DNA of 54,657 bases, taken from Octopus bimaculoides. Taxonomy: Eukaryota. The stretch is from positions 4,669,108-4,723,764 of the forward strand of contig NC_068986.1 in NCBI RefSeq assembly GCF_001194135.2, given 5' to 3'. This document shows, in pieces, positions 4,441 through 53,750 of the stretch. The position numbers were made by a program, and so were the translations under genes. How positions within the stretch are numbered: the first letter of the stretch is position 1; each line of letters opens with the position of its first letter. Under the pieces are notes generated by a model, which had not been told where the DNA came from, ran no database searches, and was given only the letters and a program-made list of their open reading frames with translations.

Positions 4441-4485
<45 letters not shown>

Positions 4486-4489
4486 TGTA

Positions 4490-4860
4490 TGGGTACAGAA
4501 CGTCACCAACTGTGTAAACAACATGAAGTATGAAAACAAATGAGTTAAATATGCAAACGAGATANNNNNNNNNNNNNNNNNNNNNNNNNNNNNNNNNNNN
4601 NNNNNNNNNNNNNNNNNNNNNNNNNNNNNNNNNNNNNNNNNNNNNNNNNNNNNNNNNNNNNNNNNNNNNNNNNNNNNNNNNNNNNNNATATATATATATA
4701 TATATATAGTTCAAATTTACAGAAAACAAAAGACAAAGACAGGTGTAGGAACAACAAGTAGGTGTATTAGTTTAACACTTGGGGAGAATGGAAAAGTCTT
4801 TGGCTTTTCAAGCTTACGCTCTTCAACAGACAAAAACAAAAGGAGAGAGAATGAAAAAAT
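4490..4860. mobile_element. Probable Penelope-like element terminal fragment spanning a gap
   Basis: Carries a hammerhead-like core on the minus strand (4796-4830), as PLE pseudo-LTRs do. Family identity is from recall only; no RT or GIY-YIG coding sequence is visible. Confidence 0.35.
4565..4687. other. Assembly gap (N)
   Basis: Run of N between TA microsatellite edges. Confidence 0.99.
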
Positions 4861-5130: not shown

Positions 5131-5616
5131 ACTTAAAAAAACATGAGGCCATTATGAATTTGTATGGCTTCAGCATGTATTATGAAGTGAATATTTTAAG
5201 TCTTTTAAGTCTGGGATTGTTCATTTTTTCTTCGAATTAAAATTCTTTTCTATTTAAACATTGACAAATTGCCATCAAATGATAGAAAAAAAAATTTTCA
5301 TTGGGAAAAAAGGGGAGTGTCTGGAAAAACAGTTGCCTGTAATAACAAGGGAAATGATACTGAATTTCAAGGCTGCAAATAAATGGTGGGATACATCGAC
5401 TGTATCTAGGACCACATTAGCCAAAGTGTTCTTCCATTTTCTTAAAAATAAGTGTGAACTGAGAAACTTGAAGTTGCTATTTTTAGCTGGTGGAGCAACA
5501 ACATAGGAACTCCCCACCAATGTTTTTGCCTTTTATTCTTTTAGCATTAACAGTTGACCGTTCACCAATACATGTGGTCTTATGTCTTAGAAATAATAAC
5601 TGTTGTTGTTATTGCA

Positions 5617-5832
5617 AAGGTGGTGAGCTGACAGAATTGTTAGCACAGCGAACAAAATGCTTAGTAGCATTTTGTCTGTTTTTAAGTTATGAGTTCAAAT
5701 TCCACTGAGGTTGACTTTGCACTTCATGATTTGGGGATTGATAAAATGAGTACCAGTTGATCAATGGGATCAATAAGATCGGTTTACCCACCTCCCTCAA
5801 AAATTGCTTGCTTTGTTCCAAAATTTGAAACC
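5617..5832 (+). mobile_element. SINE family B
   Basis: Colinear with 31490-31703. Confidence 0.8.
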
Positions 5833-5844
5833 ATTATTATTATT

Positions 5845-6029
5845 AAGGTGAAGGTGGAAAGTTGACAAAACTGTTAGCACACTGAGGAGAATGTTTTGTT
5901 CCAGCTTTTTACATTCCAAGTTCAAATTCCAGTGAGGTTGACTTTGCCTTTCATCCTTTTGTGGATCAATAAAATAAGTGCCAATCAAACACTTAGGTAA
6001 TCAACTAACCCTCTTTCCCCAAAATTTCA
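5845..6029 (+). mobile_element. SINE family B (tandem with previous)
   Basis: GTTCAAATTCCAGTGAGGTTGACTTTGCCTTTCATCCTTTT core. Confidence 0.75.
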
Positions 6030-6068
6030 TTGGCAGACATATTCATTCTTTATATATTCTGACAGATT

Positions 6069-6284
6069 AAGGCAGTATGGTTAGCACACCAAGCAAAATA
6101 CTTAGTGGCATTTCAACCATCTTCACATTCTGAATTCAAATTCTGTCAAGGTTGACTTTGCCTTTCATCCTTTTGAGCGGGGGAGGGGGGGGGTCAGTAA
6201 AGTAAGTACCAGTTGAGTACTGAGGTTGGTGTAATCAACTTACCCCTCCCCCAAAATTGCTGGCCTTGTACTAAAATTTGAAAT
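6069..6284 (+). mobile_element. SINE family B (third in tandem cluster)
   Basis: Same core and CCCAAAATTGCTGGCCTTGT..AAAATTTGAAA end. Confidence 0.78.
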
Positions 6285-6385
6285 TAACATAGTCTAGCAG
6301 ATTCAATCATAAATATGCTAATCACTGTTGAATTTCATCACTGGATAACAACTTTTCCTTTCAGTCGAATGTGTTTGTAATACAC

Positions 6386-6478
6386 TTGATTCATTGAGGT
6401 GAGGCAACTTTGAGGCATTGGTGTTTCAACCTTATTGTGTGTCTCCTCAGCCTGAGCTACCCATATCCAATGAATCAA
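6386..6478 (-). ncRNA. Type I hammerhead ribozyme-like fold, copy 1 (decayed)
   Basis: Minus strand: stem I GGUAGCUCAGG / UCAAAGUUGCC (9/11 pairs), core CUGAGGA (6444-50), stem II GAC/GUU with 10-nt loop, GAAAC, 10-nt stem III segment. Distal perfect 11-bp helix from 6386-96 and 6468-78 beyond an internal loop. Confidence 0.72.
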
Positions 6479-6636
6479 ACAGCATTTTTTTACTCTTGTT
6501 TGTAAGATTCAGTATATAAGTTATTTACTGATGCATGCTGATGTTTGCCAACTGATAATAAACCACACATGCACGGTAAGCAGCAAGAATCCAAATAATG
6601 ATTAACATATTCATTCTTAATACATTCCAGTACTAA

Positions 6637-6693
6637 GGGGACCTTGGAAAATCAGTGTTTCAACATTGTTGTCTTTCTTCAGCCAAAGCTACC
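6637..6693 (-). ncRNA. Type I hammerhead ribozyme-like fold, copy 2 (decayed)
   Basis: Minus strand: stem I GGUAGCUUUGG / CCAAGGUCCCC (9/11 pairs), core CUGAAGA (6676-82), ..GUU-GAAAC. Same register as copy 1. Confidence 0.62.
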
Positions 6694-8154
6694 ATGGACA
6701 ATGGCAGATTTGTAGGAGCACGCCATCCCCAGTTTTCTTCTTCAGACTGACTGATAAAAGGAAATGAACAAAACCAAAGTTGGTTTTTAGATATGACAAA
6801 ATTGTAGATGAAATACAATAGTACTTTCTTCATCAATTTGTAGAGAAAATTATAAATAAATAATTAAGAGAAAATATGAGAGGTAAATATAGTACTGGAG
6901 CTAATCATTGCCTGGTAAATCTGTACAGTTAATGTCATTTGTGGTAATCACTATGGATTACAATCATGAAATGCACTTGGAATACAAGAACGTTAGTAAT
7001 AATTCAGCTGCTATGTTCACTAATCTTTCCCTCCTGGAAGAAATCTTAATTACAAATAGTAAGCTAAAGGAAATAACACAAGTGGGCCAATGGTTTTAAT
7101 TTAGGTAAATCAGGTAGGTCATGATATACTCAATGGCATATACAAACAGCTCTTCATTGATTGAAATTTACCTTTTAGTTGGAGAAAGATTACAAAAACC
7201 TAGCAGTGACTGCTGGTGATTCTGTTAAAGGTGGGGAAATCATTTCAAGAAAGTACAAATTAATTTCACAGAAACTTGAATTTTCATGTATAGTGGGTAA
7301 AACCTGATATTTGTTAGCACTGTGGCAATTTTAGCTAAATTATAGCAATAGCTTTCTTTAATGGCATGCCAGATTGAAAAATAAAAACTTATTGTGTCTA
7401 TCATACTACTTGTTATTATAAGCTGCAACAGTGATTCACACACACACACACACACACACACATCCACAGTTAAGTTCTTGACTGAGTGCTATTCATAAGA
7501 ACAAAATATAAAAAACTCAAGCAGTCTTGTTTTAATTTGAAATTATTTGTATTATGACCATTGGGGAAATCCCAGTTAAACAGTAGATATTATCTGTTGA
7601 TCAAGTAAATCTAAATCTAAAAATCGAAATTCTTCCATTATAGTCATATTTGCCAAAGATTTCTGTCAGAACACTGAAGGAATAAAAAAATAAAAATAAA
7701 ATAAAAATATTATTAAGTCTGAAATTATTACCTTTTGTCATCAGATTTTGTTTATCTCCAGAGATTAATGAAGTGTTAGTGAATTGTTTTCTAAATAAAG
7801 TTGAGTTAACATGAAGACTAACATCATATTTTCATGTTTGCTTCATTCAATAATGACACTCTTCACTTTGTTCATCTTGACAATGCTTCAGGGAAAGAAC
7901 TTCTTAGTCATCTCATGAAACACAGAAACTACAAGTTGCAATATTATAGCTGAAATGATACTGTAACAACCCCTCAGTGCCACTAATTGAAATATAATTT
8001 CTTTAATATGATAGAATTTTCTCTATAATGAATGTGATGCCCACAACTACATCCTAAGTATACTACAATTCTGATCTTATGTACAACAGCTATAAGCTAT
8101 CAACCACTGACATAGAATTAATGCTATGGCTTGTCTGTCTGTTTGTGTGTGCGT

Positions 8155-8283: not shown

Positions 8284-9513
8284 CAGGGTGCAGTGAATAA
8301 ATTGTTGTCTAAATTATGCAAAAATGAAAATAACACTGACATTTCATTTTAACAGATATATTTACCAAAATTGCATTAAAATATCTTGAAATACTAAAGA
8401 GTAAATTTATTCAATATAATCGCCATTTGCTTCAACCACAGCCTCCAGACAATTTCAGAATCTCCTGCAGCTCTTCTGAATAGTTTCCTTGTTTAAGATG
8501 GTGAATGCTGCCTTAATCCATGTCTTCAGTTCATCTTTGGTGTTACTTGGAGTTTTGTTGGTCTCTCACTCAACTGCACCCCACACATAATAATCAAGAG
8601 GGTTACAGTTTGGGGAGTTAGGTGGCCAAATGTTAAAGGTGACGTGGTCACAGAAATTGTCTGACAGTCACAACTAGGTTTTCCTGCTTGTGTAGCATGG
8701 TGCAGAATCCTGTTGCCAGATATAGAGTCTTCCAGCAGTCACCCTCTTGATCTAGGGCAGCACTACTTCCTCCAGGCACTTGATATAAACCTCCATGTTG
8801 AGTTTGAAGCCGTGTGGGAAGATGAATGGAGGCACAATGTCGCCATCATTAGTGACTACTCCAAACACCATGATGTTGACTGGATGTTTGATTTTTATCA
8901 CTCTCGGTACATGTTTTGGAGGCATGGCAAGCCAACAGTTGTTCTGTGTGTTCACCCTCTGATCCTGACAGAAATCCTTCTCATCTGAGAAAAACCAAAG
9001 CATGTTCAGTTGGTGGGGATGCCTGAGTTTGTTCAAAAGCTTCATAGTGTGATCTTTTCTCCTGTCCTTGATGGCTTGTGATAAAAATTGGCCTTTCTCA
9101 TCTCGTATGAAGAATACTGAATGTCTTCATGTACTGCCTGCCTGATAAGAAACTCAGACACTTCCATGTGCCTGGCGATGGATCTGATTGACTTTGAGGA
9201 ATGATCAGAATGAGTTTTTCAAGCTGTCATACCTTCATAATCACCATTAGACTCATCCAACTCTTTGCGAATCTTCTGCACTGTCCTCAGATTGACACAC
9301 AAACACTCTGAAATGTTTGTATTGGAGCTTCCGGCACAAATGCCAAGCAGTACAGCCTGTCGTTTCAAATTTCTGGCAGCATGATGCTGTTTTTCTCACA
9401 GACTGTGCCCAACTAACCCTACTATACTGTGTAGTCGATAAAATCAAAAACAAACAATGCACATGCGCAAAATTAAAATTATAAAATGGTAACAATTTAC
9501 CCATCGCACCCTG
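8284..9513 (-). mobile_element. DD37D (maT/Bmmar1-like) IS630-Tc1-mariner DNA transposon, 1230 bp, decayed
   Basis: 23-bp TIRs CAGGGTGCAGTGAATAAATTGTT (8284-8306) and CAGGGTGCGATGGGTAAATTGTT (rc of 9491-9513), 4 mismatches. TA on both sides (8282-83, 9514-15). Contains a transposase pseudogene. Confidence 0.92.
8407..9382 (-). pseudogene. DD37D transposase pseudogene
   Basis: Manual translation across frameshifts and stops: HTH NISECLCVNLRTVQKIRKELD; SIRSIARHMEVSEFLIRQAV; WFFSDEK; HPVNIMVFGVV; WQQDSAP...WPPNSPNCNPLDYYVWG with 37 residues between the 2nd and 3rd Asp; ends EANGDYIE*. Confidence 0.9.
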
Positions 9514-10022: not shown

Positions 10023-11604
10023 TCTAGTTGCTTTATAAAAGTTCTGTTCTCACTGCTGTTTGCTCTGCTATGACTGATCTACCTGTTTACCTTTAACACA
10101 TCTTCTATTTCACTAAACATATGCCAAAATAATCATCATCTTTCAGTTTTTAATCAGAAACACAACATCAAAATAGAGATATTGACTTTGTTGTCAGCTA
10201 AAAATCTCTTTTGCAGGATCTGCCAATTCACGAATGTATATTTTCTCTCACATACACATCATAAACATTTTAATGTTTATACAGTTATTAATAAAACTAA
10301 TTGTGCGAAGTTTCTCTGTCTCGGATTTCAAGATAAATAACATTTCATGTTAGAAAGATACATGCACACTTAACAATAGGTGCCAGGCTGTCTCTACTTT
10401 CACCAGAGGCAACATTATTTGTGTTTGATTATCCCTTGGATGATGATTCACTTCTAAAAAAAGGAAGCCTGTATTTATGTTGAATATTCATTTATTTTCT
10501 TCTTTAAAAAGAACTTGTTTTAAATTACTTATTCTTTAATAGCTGGTATATGACATTGTCTTCAGTAGCAATACTACAACAACAAGAATAACATATACTT
10601 TGCAGATTTAGATTTCAGTTCACATTGTGAAATCCTACACAAGATTTTCTTTTTATATTTAATATAAAATTCCTTTCCTTTTGGCTATCCTGTATATATA
10701 GCTATTATTGTGACACCTACACTGTAAAAGATTGATTTCATTGGCTAATTGAATAATGCAAATCATGTTTATTAACATTTTGAGTGTATTTGTGTGCATA
10801 TGCATTAAAATGAGCATATTTTCAGGCATGAAATGTGCAATAATGTCGATAGTTTATCTGATCTGTAGTCAGTAATTAGTGTGTGAAATTTGAATGAAGA
10901 ACATAGTGATTTAATTGATGATATCAGAGAAAGAAATCTGATAGTTATCGTAGAATTATGTGAAACTCTGGTTATAATTATTGGTAAATTTCTTATTGGA
11001 GATCAAAACGAGTCGAGAGAAATGAAATTGCGGTGTAATTTTAAATATCCTAATCTTTGGTCGATAAATCATTGGCTGTAGTTATTCTGTTCAAGGAATG
11101 TGTGTGTATGTGCATATACACTCACACACACAAACTAAATATAATATGTATGAATGTGTGTGTGTGTGTATATCTATAATACACAAAATGGCAGTCTGGT
11201 AAGAAGCTTGCTTCCCAACCACATGGTTTTCGGTTCAGTCCCAGCTAGCTTATGTGATACTAGCCTTATGTGATTCTTACAGACCTAGGTTTCTGGATTT
11301 TATCCGTCCTCTGTGTGAGACAATCACCAGCTAATGACAAAATCTATCTCCACTTGCAAACACACACATTTTTATTAAAGCTGCAAACTTATCACAAGAC
11401 TATTACTCAGAGTTTCATGTCCCTTTCATTAGACATCACAACTGTCCGATGAATTGGAATGTAAAATAATGATTAACAGTTTTGTGATAATTTTGTAGCT
11501 TTAATAAAAGTATATTACTCTATGTTTGGTATTCAAGTACTATTTTTCACTTTATGCGCTCACCTGTGTGTGTGTGTGCGTGTGTGTGTTTGTTTGTGGT
11601 TCTA

Positions 11605-19778: not shown

Positions 19779-19943
19779 CAACAAGCTTCTTTCAGTTTCA
19801 ATCTACCAAATCCACTCACAAGGCTTTGGTTGGTCCGAGGCTATAGTAGAAGACACTTGCCCAAGATGCCACGCAGTGGGACTGAATCCAGAACCATGTG
19901 GTTGAAAAGCAAGCTTCTTACACCCCCACCCCCTCCTGCACCT
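19541..19943 (-). mobile_element. SINE family A, full length
   Basis: Reverse complement of 51487-51904 over its whole length. Confidence 0.88.
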
Positions 19944-21585: not shown

Positions 21586-22078
21586 ACAGAGGATGACATG
21601 ACAAGCCTTGACTATTGGGATCAACTAAAAAAGCTCAGGCTTTGCTCCCTCCACCGCCGCTGTGAGCTCTATATCATCTGTATGATGTGGAAAATATTCC
21701 ATCAACATTGCCCATCTTTAAAATTCGTCCAAGGCTTGGCTCCCATGCCATCCATCCACTACAGAAATGTTTGTGTCGTATCACAACACTGTGACAGAAC
21801 TATTTCACCTCAATTGGCCCAACTCTCTTTAACATCGTGCCAGACACACATAAAGGAGGAAAGTGACTTCATGGCATTCAAACGATCCCTAGATGATTAC
21901 CCCCAACAAATACCAGATAAACCACCCACACCCAGATATGTCTCTGAAAACAATAACATTCTGCTTGAATGGGCTGCAGTTTCCCAGAGCTGACTGTGTA
22001 TCTCTTACAGGTGGTGCTATTAAATTAGACATGGCCTGAGTCAACTTCGGGCGAAACTTATCGAAGTAATCTAATCTA
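21586..22078 (+). mobile_element. 5'-truncated CR1-like LINE, ORF2 C-terminus plus 3' UTR
   Basis: MTSLDYWDQLKKLRLCSLHRRCELYIICMMWKI..(frameshift) SIGPTLFNIVP..FKRSLDDYPQQIPDKPPTPRY..NNILLEW*. Short AATCT-type tail at 22068-78. Confidence 0.8.
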
Positions 22079-25408: not shown

Positions 25409-25566
25409 TGGTGCTGACACGGCTGTATGGTTAAGAAGCTTATGCAGCAAAGCCATGGTTTTGGGTTCAGTCCCACTGAACAGCAAGTGCCTTCCACTTA
25501 TAACCCAGGGCTAACCAGTGCCTTGTGAGTGAAGTTGATAGGTGGAAACTGTGTGGCATGCCATCA
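25409..25566 (+). mobile_element. SINE family A, 5' half
   Basis: ggctgtatggttaagaagc..gggttcagtcccactg..gccttgtgagtg. Confidence 0.7.
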
Positions 25567-26907: not shown

Positions 26908-27216
26908 TATTCTAGCAGTCTCTTTTGCCGAACCACTAAGTTACAGGGATGTAAACACACTGACATCAGTTGTCAAGTAATGGTGGGGGGGGGGACACTA
27001 ACACAAAGACAAACTCACATAAATATATACATATATATATATATATATTATATGCAAGCTCCTTTCAGGTTCCATCTACCAAATCAGCTCACAAGGCCTT
27101 GATCAGTCCAAAGGTTATAGTAGAAGACACTTGTCCAAGGTACCAAGCAGAGGGACTGAACTCGGAACGATGTGGTTAAGAAGAAAGTTTCTTACCATGC
27201 AGCCACACCTACACCT
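26903..27216 (-). mobile_element. SINE family A, 3'-truncated
   Basis: rc of family A from the head to ..AATAAGTAC; the tail portion is missing. Confidence 0.82.
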
Positions 27217-27547: not shown

Positions 27548-27805
27548 TTCTTTAGCATTTAAACCTGCCATAACCAGCAGGCTCAAACCAGTCAGATCTG
27601 GCCTCTCATGTCCACCCCTACGATACCCTTCTAAAAATACACAATCAGGCGTGGTTGTCTGGTAAGAAGCTTGCTACCCAACCACCTGGCTCCGGGCTCA
27701 GTCTCACTCCATGGCACCTTCTGGCAAGTATCTTCTGCTATAGCCTCGGGCCAAGATTTGGTAGACAGAAACTGAAAAAGCCCATTCTATATGTGTGTAT
27801 GTATG

Positions 27806-30157: not shown

Positions 30158-30538
30158 AACAATGATGATGCTGTTTCCAATCTAATGTATTTACCTTCTG
30201 AAATGTAATTATTTTTGATCTGTATGCTTGTAGAAATAGAAATATTTTTTCTTGTGTAAACAATTTGATGGAATACGTCAACATAATATTTATATTAAAT
30301 TTGAATGATTGCTAATTTCTTGTATTTCTGTTTTGTTTCAGTTTCTTCTATGATGTCTTCTCGATGGGTCCGTCAAATACATACGTTCAGCAAAAAATTG
30401 ATTTCATGTATCTGACAAATAGTTAACTCTACTCATATATGTATATATATATATATGTATACATATATATGTAACTAATGCTAACAAAGTCGGAAAACTT
30501 TCACAAGAGCTATATTATAAACTTTGCAGAACTTTCCT

Positions 30539-31401
30539 ATGTGGAGTAGACTATACTTGCAAACAATGATAAGTATGCATGGAAGAAAAGGTAGCATCCG
30601 TAAGCGGCTATTTGTCGGTGCTACATTTATTGTAATTTGCATCTATTTGTCCTACCAAACTTTCTCATGCGTTGGAGGCCCTAAAGTCTACATGGTTCCA
30701 AGCGACCCAATACATTACATTTACGATGAAAAGAATCGAGCTATCCCATATAACAAAGATATGCCTCTTATTTTTATTGGTGGAATGCCTCGAAGTGGTA
30801 CAACACTAATGCGTGCAATGTTAGATGCTCATCCTCTAGTACGATGCGGAGAGGAGACACGAGTCATTCCCCGTATTCTTGCCATGAGATTTCAATGGGA
30901 AAAATCAGCTGTTGAGAAAAAGAGACTCATGGAAGCAGGTATGACGTCTGATGTCGTTGATTCAGCCATATCTGCTTTCATTTTAGAAGTTATTGCAAAA
31001 CATGGAGAAGCTGCACCTCGCTTGTGTAACAAGGATCCCTTCACATTAAAATCAGGTCTTTATCTTAAGCAGTTGTTTCCAAATGCACGTTTTCTGCTGT
31101 TAATACGTGACGGCAGAGCTGTTGTACACTCTATAATTACACGCAAAGTCACAATTACCGGTTTTGATTTGACCAGCTACAGTAAATGTTTAAAGAAATG
31201 GAACCAAGCTATAGAAGCAATGTACTCGCAATGTATTCAGGCTGGCTCCAGTAGATGTATGCCAGTCTATTATGAGAAATTAGTTTTACAACCAGAAATA
31301 TGGATGCGTAAAATTCTTGAATTTCTTGACTTAGAATGGGACAGCAAAGTTTTACACCATGAAGAATATATTGGAAAACCTGGTGGTATATCTATTTCAA
31401 A
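30539..31401 (+). CDS. TPST: Protein-tyrosine sulfotransferase, coding exon 1 (type II Golgi membrane protein)
   Basis: Short basic N-tail, TM helix [20 protein letters not shown] 5'-PSB motif [40 protein letters not shown], 3'-PB motif [11 protein letters not shown] and conserved Cys in [17 protein letters not shown]. First in-frame ATG is 30539 (alternatives 30566, 30575). The exon ends AA|GTAAGT (phase-2 donor at 31402). The TTG start in the ORF track is not the likely start. Confidence 0.96.
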
Positions 31402-31489
31402 GTAAGTACAAACATAATTGTATCACTTTATGTTAACTGCCTTTTTTGTTTTATATTTTTGTATATAGTTTTTAATATCAGCAAAGTAG

Positions 31490-33398: not shown

Positions 33399-33753
33399 AA
33401 CTGAGCGCTCAACAGACCAAGTAATTCAACCTGTAAATCTAGAAGCTTTGTCAAAATGGGTTGGTAAAATGCCGAAGGATGTTGTTGAAGGCATGTCTGA
33501 AATTGCTCCAATGCTCGCTGTTCTTGGATATGATCCAAAAGCAAACCCACCTAATTATGGAAAGCCTGATGCAATGGTGGCAGAAAATACTCAGAATATA
33601 CAGAAGAACAGAGAATTCTGGAAGAAAAAAGTCGACATAATCATTAAAGATACCCCAGCAAAAGGTTCTATCTCCAATCGAACACAAAGTTTTCACAAAT
33701 CTCTTAGCAGAACAGATAAGCATTGGAGGAACACATCAAGTCACATGACATGA
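33399..33753 (+). CDS. TPST: Protein-tyrosine sulfotransferase, coding exon 2 (C-terminus)
   Basis: Acceptor tttcttAG at 33397-33398. The phase-2 join gives GGISISK|[48 protein letters not shown], the TPST1/2 C-terminal signature. Stop TGA 33751-33753. Joined CDS is 1218 nt = 405 aa. Confidence 0.95.
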
Positions 33754-35546
33754 TCTTGTATTAACAAAGTAAATCAAAATTCCACCATTACTAAAGCAGT
33801 TTATAATTCAGTAACCAAGGAGATATTTGTTAGATGTTCCAGCATCATTGTATCTCATCAAGAAATCTGCTGCCATGTAAACCAGGGCAATTTTAGTTTG
33901 AATTTAATCTGTGACAGAAAGAATTACATTTTAAATATTTGCTGACAGTATGTTTATGTGCAAAAAAACTGAAATGGTACAAATACACCCCCACCCCAAC
34001 AAACAAACAAAAAAAAATTAATCATGTACTTACTAAAAGAAGATTATTTTGAAAGAACTTAACCTTCTCTCTCTATTAGTTTGCAACATCCACAAAAACA
34101 TATTTAGATTTATTTTTTCACATACATCATCAAAATATTTTCATTTCCACGAAAATATTATTTCCATCTTTATTTCTCATAATTATTCATTTTTGTTGGA
34201 TTTCTTTTCAACTCTCATTCCAAAACACATCAGACTGACAATGTTAAGATATGAACATCAATTATGAAGAGATTAAAACAGAGACAAGAATGAAAACTGG
34301 ATTTTGTTTTATGTATATTTTTACTTGGCAATTCCAAGAAAGTTATCATGAAAAAAATTTAGTCAAAATAAAAGATGTCATTTTTCATTTTTTTTTTTCC
34401 TTTTTTTCTGTTGAAGTGGGATTATCTTCATCGTATAATACATGTCTTTCATTGACCACAGAAGTCGAAAAAATGACACCACAAATCATAAAGTCAAAAA
34501 AATTGACACTGCAGATCATAATGTTGAGAAAGAGCCATCAGAGATCACGATGTCAAAGATAGAAATCCCTGCCACCAAAAACATTCATTTCATCAATAAA
34601 AAGATTTTTGCAACAGATTGTTCTCTTTTAATTGTATTCTTTGATATCTTTTAATGAATTAACAACTGTAATTAATAATTTAATCTCTGCGATATAGTTA
34701 AATGTAACGTATAAATGTTAACTTATAGTAGCATGCCAGTTCTGGATTACAAGCTCTAAGGACAAGTATTTGAAGCTCAACCAGATAGTAGTATTTCCTT
34801 TTGGCCTTGTTACTAATCTTACTTCTCAGTATCACATTATCACAATATACATTTCATGGTCAAATAATTTACAGAAGACAGTTTTACTATAAAACAGTAA
34901 CTTTAACAATTCCTTGTAAATATTTGAATTTTCAGTTTTATCTCAAAAAGAAGTACATAAAAATATCAGAAACAGATATACAATATTACTGTATAGTTTT
35001 TGTTTTAATTCAAAAATCTTACTATATCTCAAGTGTTTTGTTTAAATCAAAGGTTCTTATATTATCTTTTCATGTTTTCAGAGATTTGCTGATCCACTGA
35101 GTGGAATTAGCTAAATACAGTGAATTTACAGACCAGATATAAACTGTTAAGAGTTATGTTATGTTATGTTTCCATTGTCAATCTGACAGACTGAAGTAGT
35201 CCTACATATTTCATTTGTTTAACAACTGCTTTCCTAGTTAATGAGTTAGACAGTGAATTATTTGAAGCAGGATTTAATAGTCAGATGCTCTTCCTGTTGC
35301 CAACCCTTGTTTTTAAGAAAGGTTGTTTTTTTGTTTTTTTTACTCCAGAAGCACAGAACAACCAGTCATAATGTCAAAACCATCCCTGTTTCACTCAACC
35401 AGGGATGAGTCTGGAATGTCAACATTCTATGAAAGGAAATAGTGTGAAGATGGTGAAGAGGGGACATCACTGTTTGAATGTTTACTGAAGTTTGAGACTG
35501 AATATCTACTGCAGCAATTTTTGAAACATTTGATTTCTGATATATG

Positions 35547-37272: not shown

Positions 37273-37422
37273 ATGTATGGTAAGAAGCTTGGTTCCCAAC
37301 CCTATGGTTCCAGGTTCACTCCCACTGTGTGGCACTTTGAGCAAGTGTCTTCCAGTATAGCTTCAGGTTGACTAAAGCCTTGTGGGTGGATTTGGTAGGT
37401 GAAAACCCAAAGAAGCCTGTCA
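37273..37422 (+). mobile_element. SINE family A, 5' half
   Basis: ggtaagaagcttggttcccaacc..gcactttgagcaagtgtcttc..aagaagcctgtc, then (TA)n. Confidence 0.75.
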
Positions 37423-37840: not shown

Positions 37841-38225
37841 AGGCACAGGAGTGGCTGTGTGGTGGGTGGCTTGCTTGCCAACCACATGGTTCCGGGTTTG
37901 GTCCCGCTGCATGGCACCTTGGGTAGGTGTCTTCTACTACGGCCTCGGGCCGACCAAGGCCTTGTGAGTGGATTTGGTAGATGGAAGCTGAAAGAAGCCC
38001 GTCATCTATATGTATATGTATATATATGTGTTTGTCCCCACCAACATTGCTTGACAACCAATGCTGGTGTGTTTACATCCCCATAACTTAGCAGTTCAGC
38101 AAAAGCAACTGATAGAATAAGTACTAAGCTTACAAAGAATAAGTCCTGGGGTCAATTTCCTCGACTAAAGGCAGTGCTCCAGTATGGCCACAGTCAAATG
38201 ACTGAAACAAGTGGAAAAAAAAGAA
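37841..38225 (+). mobile_element. SINE family A, full length
   Basis: Colinear with 51487-51904. Confidence 0.88.
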
Positions 38226-50683: not shown

Positions 50684-52267
50684 TTTATTTCATCAATTTC
50701 TATGTAAATATCCAAATTAATAGAACCAACCAAATTCTAATACATTTCTAAGACATTTCTAATACAAAAAGGAATAATAAATCTTAAAACAATGTTATCC
50801 TTTTCGTTTAATTATTCCCTTTTCTATTATCAATTTGAGATTAAACTGTATTTGTTTTGTGTCTTTTTTTTCAGCCTGGCCATAACATCTAACAAGGACT
50901 TTCAACGAATTAAATGAATTACAAGAAAGTAGATGGTTTATCAAAGAATATAACTCAGTTAACAAGCTTATAAAAATCTTCCTCATCAGATAAATATGTT
51001 ATTTATAATCGCAGTCTCTACTGAAAGCATTTTAATCTCATCTTCCCCTTTGATATTTTTATTTGAGCAAAAAGGATTTGTATACATACAGATACAAGCA
51101 TAGCAGTGAGGTTAAAAAGTTCACTTTATAACCCTATGTTTCTATGTTCGATCCTATTGTACAGCACCTTGGACAAACCACACAAAAATATTGAGGTGTG
51201 TTCTCAAGATCATTAATAGCAAGAGAAATCATTACTTAATTATCATAGATTTAAATTGACAAGAATCTCTTACTCTAGGATGTTTACATCAAACATCTAA
51301 GATAAAGCACAAGAACCAGAGATATTGAATTCTTCACACCTCATAATTGAGCTTACTAAATTATTCTGTTGATTAATTATTGCTGATGCACATCATCAGT
51401 AATTTCCTTGCATTCCAGAGTGAAATGGTTCCAACAAGGATTAAGCAAAAAGCTCCTATAATCTTAAAGGAAAGATGATCATACATAGGCGCGGAGTGGC
51501 TGTGTGGTAAGTAGCCTGCTTACAAACCACATGGTTCCGGGTTCAGTCCCACTGCGTGGCACCTGGGCAAGTGTCTTCTACTATAGCCTCGGGCCGACCA
51601 AAGCCTTGTGAGTGGATTTGATAGACAGAAACTGAAAGAAGTCCGTCGTATATATGTATATATATATGTATGTGTGTGTGTATGTTTGTGTGTCTGTGTT
51701 TGTCCCCCCAACATTGCTTGACAACCGATGGTGGTGTGTTTACGTCCCCGTAACTTAGCGGTTCGGCAAAAGAGATCGATAGAATAAGTACCAGGCTTAC
51801 AAAGAATAAGTCCCGGGGTCGATTTGCTCGACTAAAGGCGGTGCTCCAGCATGGCCGCAGTCAAATGACTGAAACAAGTAAAAGAGTAAAAGAGTAAAAA
51901 GAGTATACATCTTGAAGGGAAGAGAAGAGATACCGGAAGAGAAGAGATACCAGAAGAGAAGAGATACCAGAAGAGAAGAGATACACATATTTGATGAGGA
52001 TTTTTGTAAGCTTGTTAACCGAGTCATATTCTTTGACAAACCATCTATTTTCTTGTAAATCTCTTATTTTGTTGAAAGTCCTTGTTAGATATTGTGTCCA
52101 GGCTGCAAGAAAACAGCTTAACCTCAAACTGATAAAAAAAGAAAATAATTGCATGAAAATGATAATATTGTTTTTAGATTTATTATTCTTTTCTGTGTTA
52201 GAATTTGGTTTGCTCTATTAATTTGGTTATTTACATAGAAATTCTTCAGAGAAATTAATGAAATAAA
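50684..52267. repeat. Inverted duplication (arms about 50684-50998 and 51986-52267)
   Basis: The 107-nt cores 50872-50978 and rc 51999-52105 match 94/107 with no indels; the AT-rich flanks also align, with indels. Confidence 0.9.
51487..51904 (+). mobile_element. tRNA-derived SINE family A, young full-length copy
   Basis: A box TGGCTGTGTGG, B box GGTTCAGTCCC, central (TA/TG)n, (AAAAGAGT)n tail, TSD ATACAT (51481-86, 51905-10), CpGs retained. Confidence 0.9.
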
Positions 52268-52560: not shown

Positions 52561-53487
52561 TAATTAAATTCCACATTTTGTTCACTACACTACTCATACT
52601 GCCAATCCACAGCCACCATTTTTCCTACAGATTCTGTTAACCTGCCTCCTTTAACATCTCTCACACATGCTCTTTCTAACTCTAAGAGCACCCCTCACTC
52701 CCTATCTCTCTTCTCATACACACACAGTTCTTCAGTCTCTCCTTTTTGAAATATAAAATGTCAATTAAGGAAAGAGATTAAGGCAAATTATTACTACTTT
52801 TTTTCTCCATCAATCATCAAACATATTCAATTTAACTCTTTACTTTCACAGTCTGCAAAAATGAAGAGAACGTGAGAAAATGACATATTTCATACAAGTT
52901 TCAGCTATGACCGACCATAATAATCAGATCAATGCTACTTTTATTAGTGTGTACAATGAAATGAAGTCAAAATTAGAATTTATAGATGGGGCATGGTTAC
53001 AAAGAACAAGATGCGATATATGGATTCAGAATAAATGTTACATTTGAGTAACAAATTTGATATAATTAATTTTTAAGTGTTTATTTTTTAAAAGAAATAT
53101 GTACGTAGTATTTTTTAATTAACTAAGCAATTCAGATTGAAGGAAAAATCTAGTGGGAAACAATAATTGAAATAATATTTCCTCTTTGTAATAGCAGTTA
53201 TTTTTGGATGGACATTAACTAAACTAGAAACATTCAAGAAAATAACTGAATCAAGGACCATTTCCTAAATGCCTGATTATATTTCCTGCAGCTGGATTTG
53301 AGTCATTGCGATCAGTGTTAGATAACCGCAACCTATTATGCGAAGTTATGATGACCTAAGGAGGGAGAGCTACTGGGTAATCAGTCAACACATAAAATAA
53401 AATAGTTGTTAAATGTGCTTCAAATTACACAGTTTTGTCCTGGAGAAAAAAAAGGAAAGATGAATTTTGTAAAGTATTCTTAGATGC

Positions 53488-53750
53488 CCTTCATCCTTCA
53501 TGCATCCTTTCCAGGTTTTCTGAGGTTGTCCAACTTCCCTCTTTCCTTCAGTTTGCCAGTTAACACTTGATTTGCAATGCTGCTTGGAGGTCTCTTTAAA
53601 GTGTGACCAATCCAGCCTAATTTCCTTTTCAGAATTTTTTTTATTAATGGGGGTTTTGTTCGTTCTACCCCACAGACTTCTGCTTGAAATTTTGTCCAGC
53701 CACCAGATCTTGGGGATGTAGCACAGACATTTGTTCACAAAGGAAATCAA
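53488..53750 (-). mobile_element. RTE-clade LINE fragment (different subfamily)
   Basis: SFVNKCLCYIPKIWWLDKIS..LWGRTNKTPI (frameshift) KRKLGWIGHTLKRPPSSIA (frameshift) WQTEGKREVGQPQKTWKGCM. Confidence 0.78.

Follow-up and report, generated by a model that had tools for sequence, protein, structure and literature searches.

We analysed a 54,657-nt stretch of the Octopus bimaculoides genome (NCBI RefSeq assembly GCF_001194135.2, contig NC_068986.1, positions 4,669,108 to 4,723,764 of the forward strand), called the window below and searched on either strand. Near its start, two related minus-strand sequences resemble the type I hammerhead ribozyme, and their spacing recalls the small non-coding retroelements known as retrozymes. 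Here we describe what lies at this locus and weigh whether the two sequences are the remains of such an element.

Two related motifs on the minus strand

The descriptor used for the search placed CUGANGA and GAAA, separated by a gap, between two complementary strands of 11 nt. The first strand directly preceded CUGANGA, a second gap separated GAAA from the other strand, and the two strands had to form 9/11 pairs or more, G.U included. On either strand of the window our script matched only two places, which we call copy 1 and copy 2. Read on the minus strand, copy 1 (6461..6403) has the order GGUAGCUCAGG-CUGAGGA-GACACACAAUAAGGUU-GAAA-CACCAAUGCC-UCAAAGUUGCC, and copy 2 (6693..6637) the order GGUAGCUUUGG-CUGAAGA-AAGACAACAAUGUU-GAAA-CACUGAUUUU-CCAAGGUCCCC. 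Both keep one register, with a segment of 14-16 nt between CUGANGA and GAAAC and 10 nt from GAAA to the 3' strand of helix I. The 5' core box CUGANGA is exact and directly follows the 5' strand of helix I (CUGAGGA in copy 1, CUGAAGA in copy 2), helix II is followed by the 3' core box GAAAY, which reads GAAAC in both, and helix I forms 9/11 pairs in each copy, including three G.U in copy 1 and two in copy 2. The putative cuts fall at 6414/6413 and 6648/6647, a distance of 234 nt. In addition, copy 1 is enclosed by a perfect 11-bp inverted repeat (6468-6478 / 6386-6396) whose arms each lie 6 nt outside helix I; the homologous positions of copy 2 are paired at about 6/11 by a hand count from the alignments. 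The features, in minus-strand order, are as follows.

6609..6714, minus strand: copy 2 unit, the upstream copy of a homologous unit of ~110 nt (nhmmer envelope, 85.7 bits)
6637..6693, minus strand: copy 2 hammerhead-like motif (descriptor, anchored pair count)
6647..6648, minus strand: putative copy 2 cleavage position, after U6648 (anchored register; triplet UUU, not R-U-H)
6493..6608, minus strand: unique spacer between the units, ~116 nt (no homologue by self-blastn and nhmmer)
6369..6492, minus strand: copy 1 unit, the downstream copy (nhmmer, 116 bits)
6403..6461, minus strand: copy 1 hammerhead-like motif (descriptor, anchored pair count)
6413..6414, minus strand: putative copy 1 cleavage position, after C6414 (anchored register; triplet GCC)
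6468..6478, minus strand: 5' arm of the copy 1 distal helix, UUGAUUCAUUG, with a 6 x 6 internal loop between arm and helix I
6386..6396, minus strand: 3' arm of the copy 1 distal helix, CAAUGAAUCAA, partner of 6468..6478
6414..6647, minus strand: predicted 234-nt "monomer" between the two cuts, GC content 36.8%

Since the descriptor matches, the spacing of the cuts and the inverted repeat were all verified, the observation itself is real. A preliminary description of this DNA had reported two homologous minus-strand motifs in one register, nine of eleven helix I pairs per copy, cuts at 6414/6413 and 6648/6647 with 234 nt between them, and a perfect 11-bp helix joining 6386-96 to 6468-78 in copy 1; descriptor, alignments and pair counts bear out each of these. 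Several of its finer statements had to be revised. The stem I strand that it reconstructed, CCAAAGCUACC, requires two bases absent from both copies; the best mixture of the two 3' strands, UCAAAGUUGCC and CCAAGGUCCCC, is CCAAAGUUGCC, which pairs at 11/11 positions with two G.U. It had described a change of GUC to GUU before GAAA, where in fact both copies read GUU-GAAA and GUC is a reconstruction. The cleavage triplet GUC is likewise reconstructed, the actual triplets being GCC in copy 1 and UUU in copy 2, and the spacing, given there as GAAAC, 10 nt and one nucleotide, exceeds the actual GAAA plus 10 nt by 2 nt.

The likeness between the copies extends beyond the motifs. With a profile of both copies, nhmmer found 6492-6369 and 6714-6609 homologous over ~105-124 nt. 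Default blastn aligned 6421-6461 with 6655-6693 at 80% identity over 41 nt, and relaxed scoring extended this to 6385-6472 against 6616-6703 (67% over 91 columns, E 1e-5). The Smith-Waterman score of copy 1 against copy 2 was 28, compared with 9.4 +/- 1.6 for shuffled sequence. Within the motif 41/59 columns are identical, comprising 11/11 in the core and ~65% of the remainder. The 116-nt spacer (6493-6608) occurs only once, so that the array amounts to ~1.46 units of ~231-234 nt. After the two copies, the next nhmmer match is 33816-33893 on the minus strand (E 0.11); it lies just past the last exon of a sulfotransferase gene described below, reads UUGAUGAG...GGAAC with both hammerhead boxes absent, and is probably a chance match. 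By eye, 6374-6291 looked like a third copy, but the resemblance was not significant by Smith-Waterman (P 0.36-0.69) and was rejected. In collections that do not include cephalopod genomes, the exact degenerate pattern with its 23 fixed bases gave 0 matches in metagenome contigs, and the 56-aa translation across copy 1 gave no candidate among 5.8 billion proteins.

Helix pairing and chance expectation

Because the gap of a MAFFT alignment fell inside helix II, a script was used to count the pairs, with hammerhead numbering that takes the core as its anchor. Once the boxes and the register of helix I are set, the numbering fixes the partners within helices II and III, whose pairs therefore serve as an independent test. 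In helix I, copy 1 has C.A and A.A mismatches at positions 3-4 from the core, and copy 2 has U.C and A.C mismatches at the outer end, its seven core-proximal positions being all paired. Helix II of copy 1, GACA/CACAAUAA/GGUU, forms 3/4 pairs (G.U, A-U and C-G, followed by an A.G mismatch), and that of copy 2, AAGA/CAACAA/UGUU, also forms 3/4 (A-U, A-U, a G.G mismatch and A-U).

Helix III forms 2/3 pairs in each copy. In copy 1, A15.1.C16.1 is broken while C-G and A-U are paired, the tetraloop is CCAA and position 17 is C; because its triplet is GCC, this copy is missing U16.1 and carries the A.C mismatch. In copy 2, A15.1-U16.1 and A-U are paired around a broken C15.2.U16.2, the loop is CUGA and position 17 is U; here the triplet is UUU, so that position 16.2 is unable to pair with C15.2. 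Altogether, each copy forms 14/18 anchored pairs. The two copies are never broken at the same position, so that none of the 18 pairs is lost from both. Loop 2 measures 6-8 nt, and the covariance-model alignments of both copies show no match to the modelled loops. The contact between loop I and loop II has been placed in the internal loop of copy 1, which is conjecture. On this pairing model, copy 1 without U16.1 and copy 2 without the 15.2-16.2 pair, each with a mismatch in helix II, would both be inactive now and cannot work as they stand. The preliminary description had reached the same judgement, and we agree with it.

We next set these matches against chance. For the loose descriptor, 0.16-0.23 matches are expected per window, so a single loose match means little. 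With helix II required to form at least 3/4 and helix III at least 2/3 pairs, the expectation falls to 0.0075 per window (5,313 Markov-1 simulations). On the real sequence, 720 decoys with permuted boxes of the same composition gave a mean of 0.0097 matches, and two matches arose only with the true boxes. Were copy 1 a chance match, a homologue that had diverged neutrally by 20-25% would have a probability of 0.0015-0.006 of passing as well. Shifting the register of the 3' partners by 1-3 nt lowers the count from 14/18 to 3-7 pairs in copy 1 and 4-11 in copy 2. Two homologous copies with exact boxes, anchored helices in the correct register and defects that complement each other are thus very unlikely to arise by chance in one window.

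Possible hammerhead ancestry and known systems

We read the locus as the old and inactive remains of a tandem retroelement, small and non-coding, that once bore a type I hammerhead and of which ~1.46 units of ~231-234 nt are preserved; we consider this reading evenly poised between right and wrong. How the intact ancestor would have multiplied may be taken from published metazoan retrozymes without long terminal repeats (non-LTR retrozymes; PMC7229834, PMC7761336). A transcript running through tandem units would fold one hammerhead per unit, and a host RNA ligase would close the monomer into a circle. A reverse transcriptase, probably Penelope-like, would copy this circle in more than one round, and complementary DNA longer than one unit would integrate into the genome. 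The common ancestor of the two copies presumably carried an intact hammerhead, and the copies would since have drifted neutrally until ~30% apart outside the core. Starting from an intact ancestor, drift of ~15% per lineage should leave ~14-15 of 18 pairs in each copy with few pairs broken in both, and neutral decay of this kind fits what is seen. Two further observations count for a relic, namely the continuation of helix I of copy 1 into the 11-bp distal helix, and the Rfam match of copy 2 in the same register. A scan of 81 nt around copy 2 placed the type I hammerhead RF02275 (Hammerhead_HH9) first of 4227 Rfam families (13.0 bits, E 0.66), aligned end to end in the register of the preliminary description.

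By analogy, the locus would work, or would once have worked, most like a metazoan non-LTR retrozyme. Those elements carry tandem type I hammerheads and give small circular RNAs, with monomers of 150-450 bp (220-240 bp in coral) and a GC content below 45-50%, and the invertebrate hammerheads have a helix III of 2 bp plus a tetraloop (PMC7229834). They are widespread in animals but patchy, one bivalve holding ~5,000 copies (PMC7229834), and their circles are highly self-paired (PMC7229834, PMC7761336). Like them (Cervera & de la Pena 2020, PMC7229834; PMC7761336), the locus has two type-I-oriented motifs on one strand, 234 nt apart, it is without coding capacity, long terminal repeat, primer-binding site or polypurine tract, and helix III of its copy 1 is a tetraloop closed by 2 bp. 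Non-LTR retrozymes have been reported in arrangements down to the dimer, and the locus has two motifs. Its GC content is also low at 36.8%, a value that hardly discriminates because the whole window has a GC content of 33%. Unlike those of non-LTR retrozymes, the hammerheads of the locus are not intact (no R-U-H, mismatches in helices I and II), its loops are without recognisable tertiary-contact bases, its circle is not highly self-paired (z = 0.02) and its array stops at 1.46 units. The 234-nt non-coding retrozyme monomer of the preliminary description stands in its spacing and GC content, which lie in the published range, and fails in the self-pairing of the circle.

Against the canonical metazoan type I hammerhead, with helix I of 6 bp, helix II of 4 bp and helix III of 1-2 bp with a palindromic loop of 2-4 nt (PMC4209133; our reference was Rfam clan CL00010, with RF00163 Hammerhead_1 and RF02275 Hammerhead_HH9), the likeness lies in the exact CUGANGA and GAAAC, in the order helix I, core, helix II, GAAA, helix III, site and helix I, in a helix II of four positions and in a short helix III with a 4-nt loop. 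The difference is that every helix of both copies carries one or two mismatches, that loop 2 has 6-8 nt, and that helix I has 11 positions followed, in copy 1, by a further 11-bp helix, where the canonical form ends in loop 1 after 6 bp.

The preliminary description had also drawn a link to Penelope-like pseudo-LTR hammerheads (PMC8557442). With these the locus shares type I orientation, same-strand pairs, a weak helix III and an animal host from a lineage with Penelope-like elements. However, the Penelope-like pairs flank a frame of ~3 kb for reverse transcriptase and GIY-YIG, whereas the copies here lie 234 nt apart with the frame absent; in the list of open reading frames (ORFs) no such frame lies between or around the copies (ORFs of at most 58 aa), and by eye none within 15 kb resembles reverse transcriptase. 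The minimal Penelope-like hammerhead has a helix II of 7-8 bp, a helix I of 4-5 bp and essentially no helix III (PMC4209133), in contrast to four positions, 11 positions and a helix III that is present here. By spacing and by architecture the locus does not fit this class. The hammerhead satellite repeats of amphibians and Schistosoma (PMC7229834, PMC4209133) are likewise tandem, short, AT-rich and of type I with a weak helix III, and may need two copies to act; unlike the single degenerate site of 1.46 units, they are built of numerous, almost identical units whose ribozymes are intact and cleave.

A considerable body of results weighs against the relic. At the gathering score, no Rfam family matched anywhere in the window, and at E <= 10 no hammerhead appeared in a 901-nt scan or in the 116-nt scan of copy 1. 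The 13.0 bits of copy 2 with RF02275 compare with a gathering score of 52 and, scaled to the window, are about chance level. The Infernal search against Rfam hammerheads proposed in the preliminary description thus found no model that accepts either copy. We also derived a covariance model, R1, from four retrozyme hammerheads shown by experiment to cleave (coral, mussel and two from axolotl; PMC7229834 supplement). It gave copy 1 only 2.7 bits, in a local match without helix I, and copy 2 6.7 bits, compared with chance matches of up to 12.5 bits elsewhere in the window. Both copies fail the filter used in the field, which combines CUGANGA, GAAAY and RUH with "perfect helix topology" (PMC7229834 supplement, legend S1). 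Helix II is unbroken in neither copy, and only mixing the two would give 4/4. The triplet R16.2-U16.1-H17 with its A15.1-U16.1 pair is found neither in copy 1 (GCC) nor in copy 2 (UUU), and its loss from both is somewhat unlikely under simple decay. Helix III keeps within the form of 1-2 bp and a 2-4-nt loop, and its loops CCAA and CUGA are non-palindromic.

Folding energies point the same way. The hammerhead fold comes to -1.7 kcal/mol in copy 1 and +3.5 kcal/mol in copy 2, against minimum free energies of -13.6 and -8.9 kcal/mol, so that competing folds are ~12 kcal/mol more stable; in the minimum-energy fold of copy 1, AGGC pairs with GCCU straight across the core. Even a composite of the better bases from either copy reaches -12.6 kcal/mol as a hammerhead against -16.1 kcal/mol for the alternative fold. 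The 234-nt circle, at -45.7 kcal/mol, is indistinguishable from its shuffles (-45.8 +/- 4.4, z = 0.02), and the expected rod-like circle is missing, a structure that 30% divergence would erode. The duplicated part is only the ~110-nt unit of an array of ~1.46 units. Neither blastn, relaxed blastn nor the nhmmer profile of both copies found further copies in the 54 kb, and no target-site duplication was found around the 1.46-unit block (best score 6.5, null 6.9). In the literature searched we found no cephalopod retrozyme, and the link of hammerheads or retrozymes to cephalopods ran only through Penelope-like elements, which retrozyme-bearing genomes also carry (PMC7761336) and which have expanded in octopus genomes (PMC13282606). 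Lastly, the descriptor thresholds were chosen after the matches were known, and earlier screening possibly spanned many windows and motif types, so the significance is inflated by a probably modest factor. Retrozyme membership is thus not established, with the cleavage triplet, an unbroken helix II, a curated model score and a self-paired circle all wanting.

Separately, a second hammerhead-like motif lies at 11276-11319 on the minus strand. It reads CUCACA-CAGAGGA-CGGAUAAAAUCCA-GAAAC-CUAG-GUC-UGUAAG and has GAAAC, a palindromic tetraloop, GUC and 5/6 pairs in helix I, with core U4 replaced by A. The four-sequence model R1 gives it 20.6 bits (E ~8e-4, a rough value), a post hoc descriptor expects 0.06 such motifs per window, and Rfam shows no hammerhead there at E <= 10. 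The motif adjoins an antisense head of a tRNA-like short interspersed element (SINE).

Neighbouring repeats and the origin of the locus

Directly downstream of copy 1 on the minus strand, three SINE-like units lie head to tail on the plus strand (5603-6300), with periods of 234, 234 and ~220 nt, a B-box-like GAGTTCAAATTCC, and neither spacer nor poly-A between them. We examined whether their 234-nt period is linked to the 234-nt spacing of the hammerhead-like motifs and, finding no similarity beyond 36 nt, treated it as coincidence. These 36 nt lie just 3' of copy 2 on the minus strand (6606-6640) and recur at 6036-6072, where SINE-like units 2 and 3 meet (Smith-Waterman P ~0.003), with a 23-nt core that is 91% identical. 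Unit 3 also contains, at 6176-6255, a hairpin of a G-run and a C-run that Rfam scores as mir-761 at 18.8 bits, chance level against a threshold of 82.

Elsewhere in the window, the tRNA-like SINE head of ~55 nt occurs in eight copies that are 76-89% identical, with a B box of the GGTTCAGTCCC type, several of them beside microsatellites. The coding and other features of the window are given with them.

11189-11243, 19877-19921, 25421-25475, 27152-27205, 27652-27706, 37275-37324, 37852-37905 and 51497-51551: tRNA-like SINE heads
30524-31405 and 33448-33753, plus strand: two coding exons of a protein-tyrosine sulfotransferase (TPST), with PF13469 and PF00685 in the matched proteins; the exon at 30524-31405 is 63-71% identical to named molluscs, and its best relatives, at 92%, are transcript-like contigs of at most 2.3 kb
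8752-9045 (minus strand), 21598-21993 (plus strand) and 53409-53750 (minus strand): ORF fragments that by eye resemble mariner/Tc1 transposase and the C-terminal regions of reverse transcriptase from long interspersed elements (LINEs)
~4483-4687, ~25.8-26.8 kb and ~45.3 kb: assembly-gap runs of N, flanked by (TA)n/(AT)n and other microsatellites

Two other origins have to be set beside a hammerhead relic. The locus could be hairpin-forming non-coding DNA with a partial tandem duplication (~1.5 copies, period ~231-234 nt), in which the likeness to a hammerhead is coincidental and no ribozyme ever existed. We regard this as a real possibility, held at somewhat less than even confidence. Matches to the loose motif are frequent (0.16-0.23 per window), the covariance-model tests all fail or fall at chance level, the cleavage triplet is absent from both copies, the hammerhead fold is energetically poor and the 234-nt monomer is not self-paired. 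Coincidence would also sit well with a repetition limited to the ~110-nt unit, the target-site duplication that was not found, and the possible screening of many windows and motif types beforehand. Perfect 11-bp inverted repeats are enriched in the window, at 9 where 2.6 are expected, and a tandem structure, the SINE-like trimer at 5603-6300, adjoins the locus. What such a coincidence has difficulty with is joint rarity, for which one copy at 0.0075 per window has to be multiplied by 0.0015-0.006 for a passing homologue and again by the chance that the site falls in a duplication. Nor did any decoy box pair among the 720 variants give two matches in the real sequence. The copies have kept 11/11 core bases while the rest of the motif is ~65% identical, and their defects are complementary, as decay from an intact ancestor predicts.

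Alternatively, though we consider this improbable, the copies could be two nearby examples of some other hairpin repeat, either a stem-loop from the 3' tail of a LINE or SINE, an inverted-repeat element like a miniature inverted-repeat transposable element (MITE), or a tRNA-derived head transcribed by RNA polymerase III. Copy 1 does form a strong hairpin (105 nt, -31.5 kcal/mol, z = -2.6), SINEs are dense in the window, and the 36 nt directly 3' of copy 2 (6606-6640) recur at 6036-6072 beside a SINE-like unit; by eye, we take GUAGCUCAG to be A-box-like or similar to a tRNA D-arm, and GGUUGAAAC to be B-box-like. Yet the unit is dissimilar to the neighbouring SINE-like units and to the rest of the 54 kb, no flanking duplication was detected, and the hammerhead boxes would stay an unexplained coincidence. 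The MITE was rejected, since the 11-bp repeat lies internal to the homologous unit rather than at its ends and so is not a terminal inverted repeat. The RNA polymerase III head was likewise rejected, ARAGORN finding no tRNA in the window and the Rfam scans no match of tRNA or SINE type.

How the balance falls between these origins and a decayed hammerhead element depends on the prior, namely the likelihood that a family of this kind was at some time present in this genome. The interpretation put forward in the preliminary description is supported in part. The boxes, the anchored helices and a pairing beyond chance speak for it, and the model scores, the field filter and the self-pairing of the circle speak against it; of the decayed dimer that it proposed, the two related hammerhead-like motifs stand and the full second unit does not, the array ending at 1.46 units. 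A wider proposal is that the locus is one fossil of an undescribed cephalopod family of ~230-nt type I hammerhead retrozymes, whose intact members elsewhere would be self-cleaving, would build up in octopus tissues as small circular RNAs and would be mobilised by Penelope-like elements. This we think rather unlikely.

As it stands, the locus is dead, and no present-day function for it is plausible. If the likeness is a coincidence, it illustrates how exact core boxes with permissive helices can mislead, and how the statistics of a descriptor may be at odds with covariance models. Hammerhead circular-RNA retroelements are known from cnidarians, bivalves, rotifers, flatworms, arthropods and amphibians. 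If the locus is indeed the relic of such an element, it would be a lead to hammerhead circular-RNA retroelements in cephalopods, extending the known pattern without changing it.

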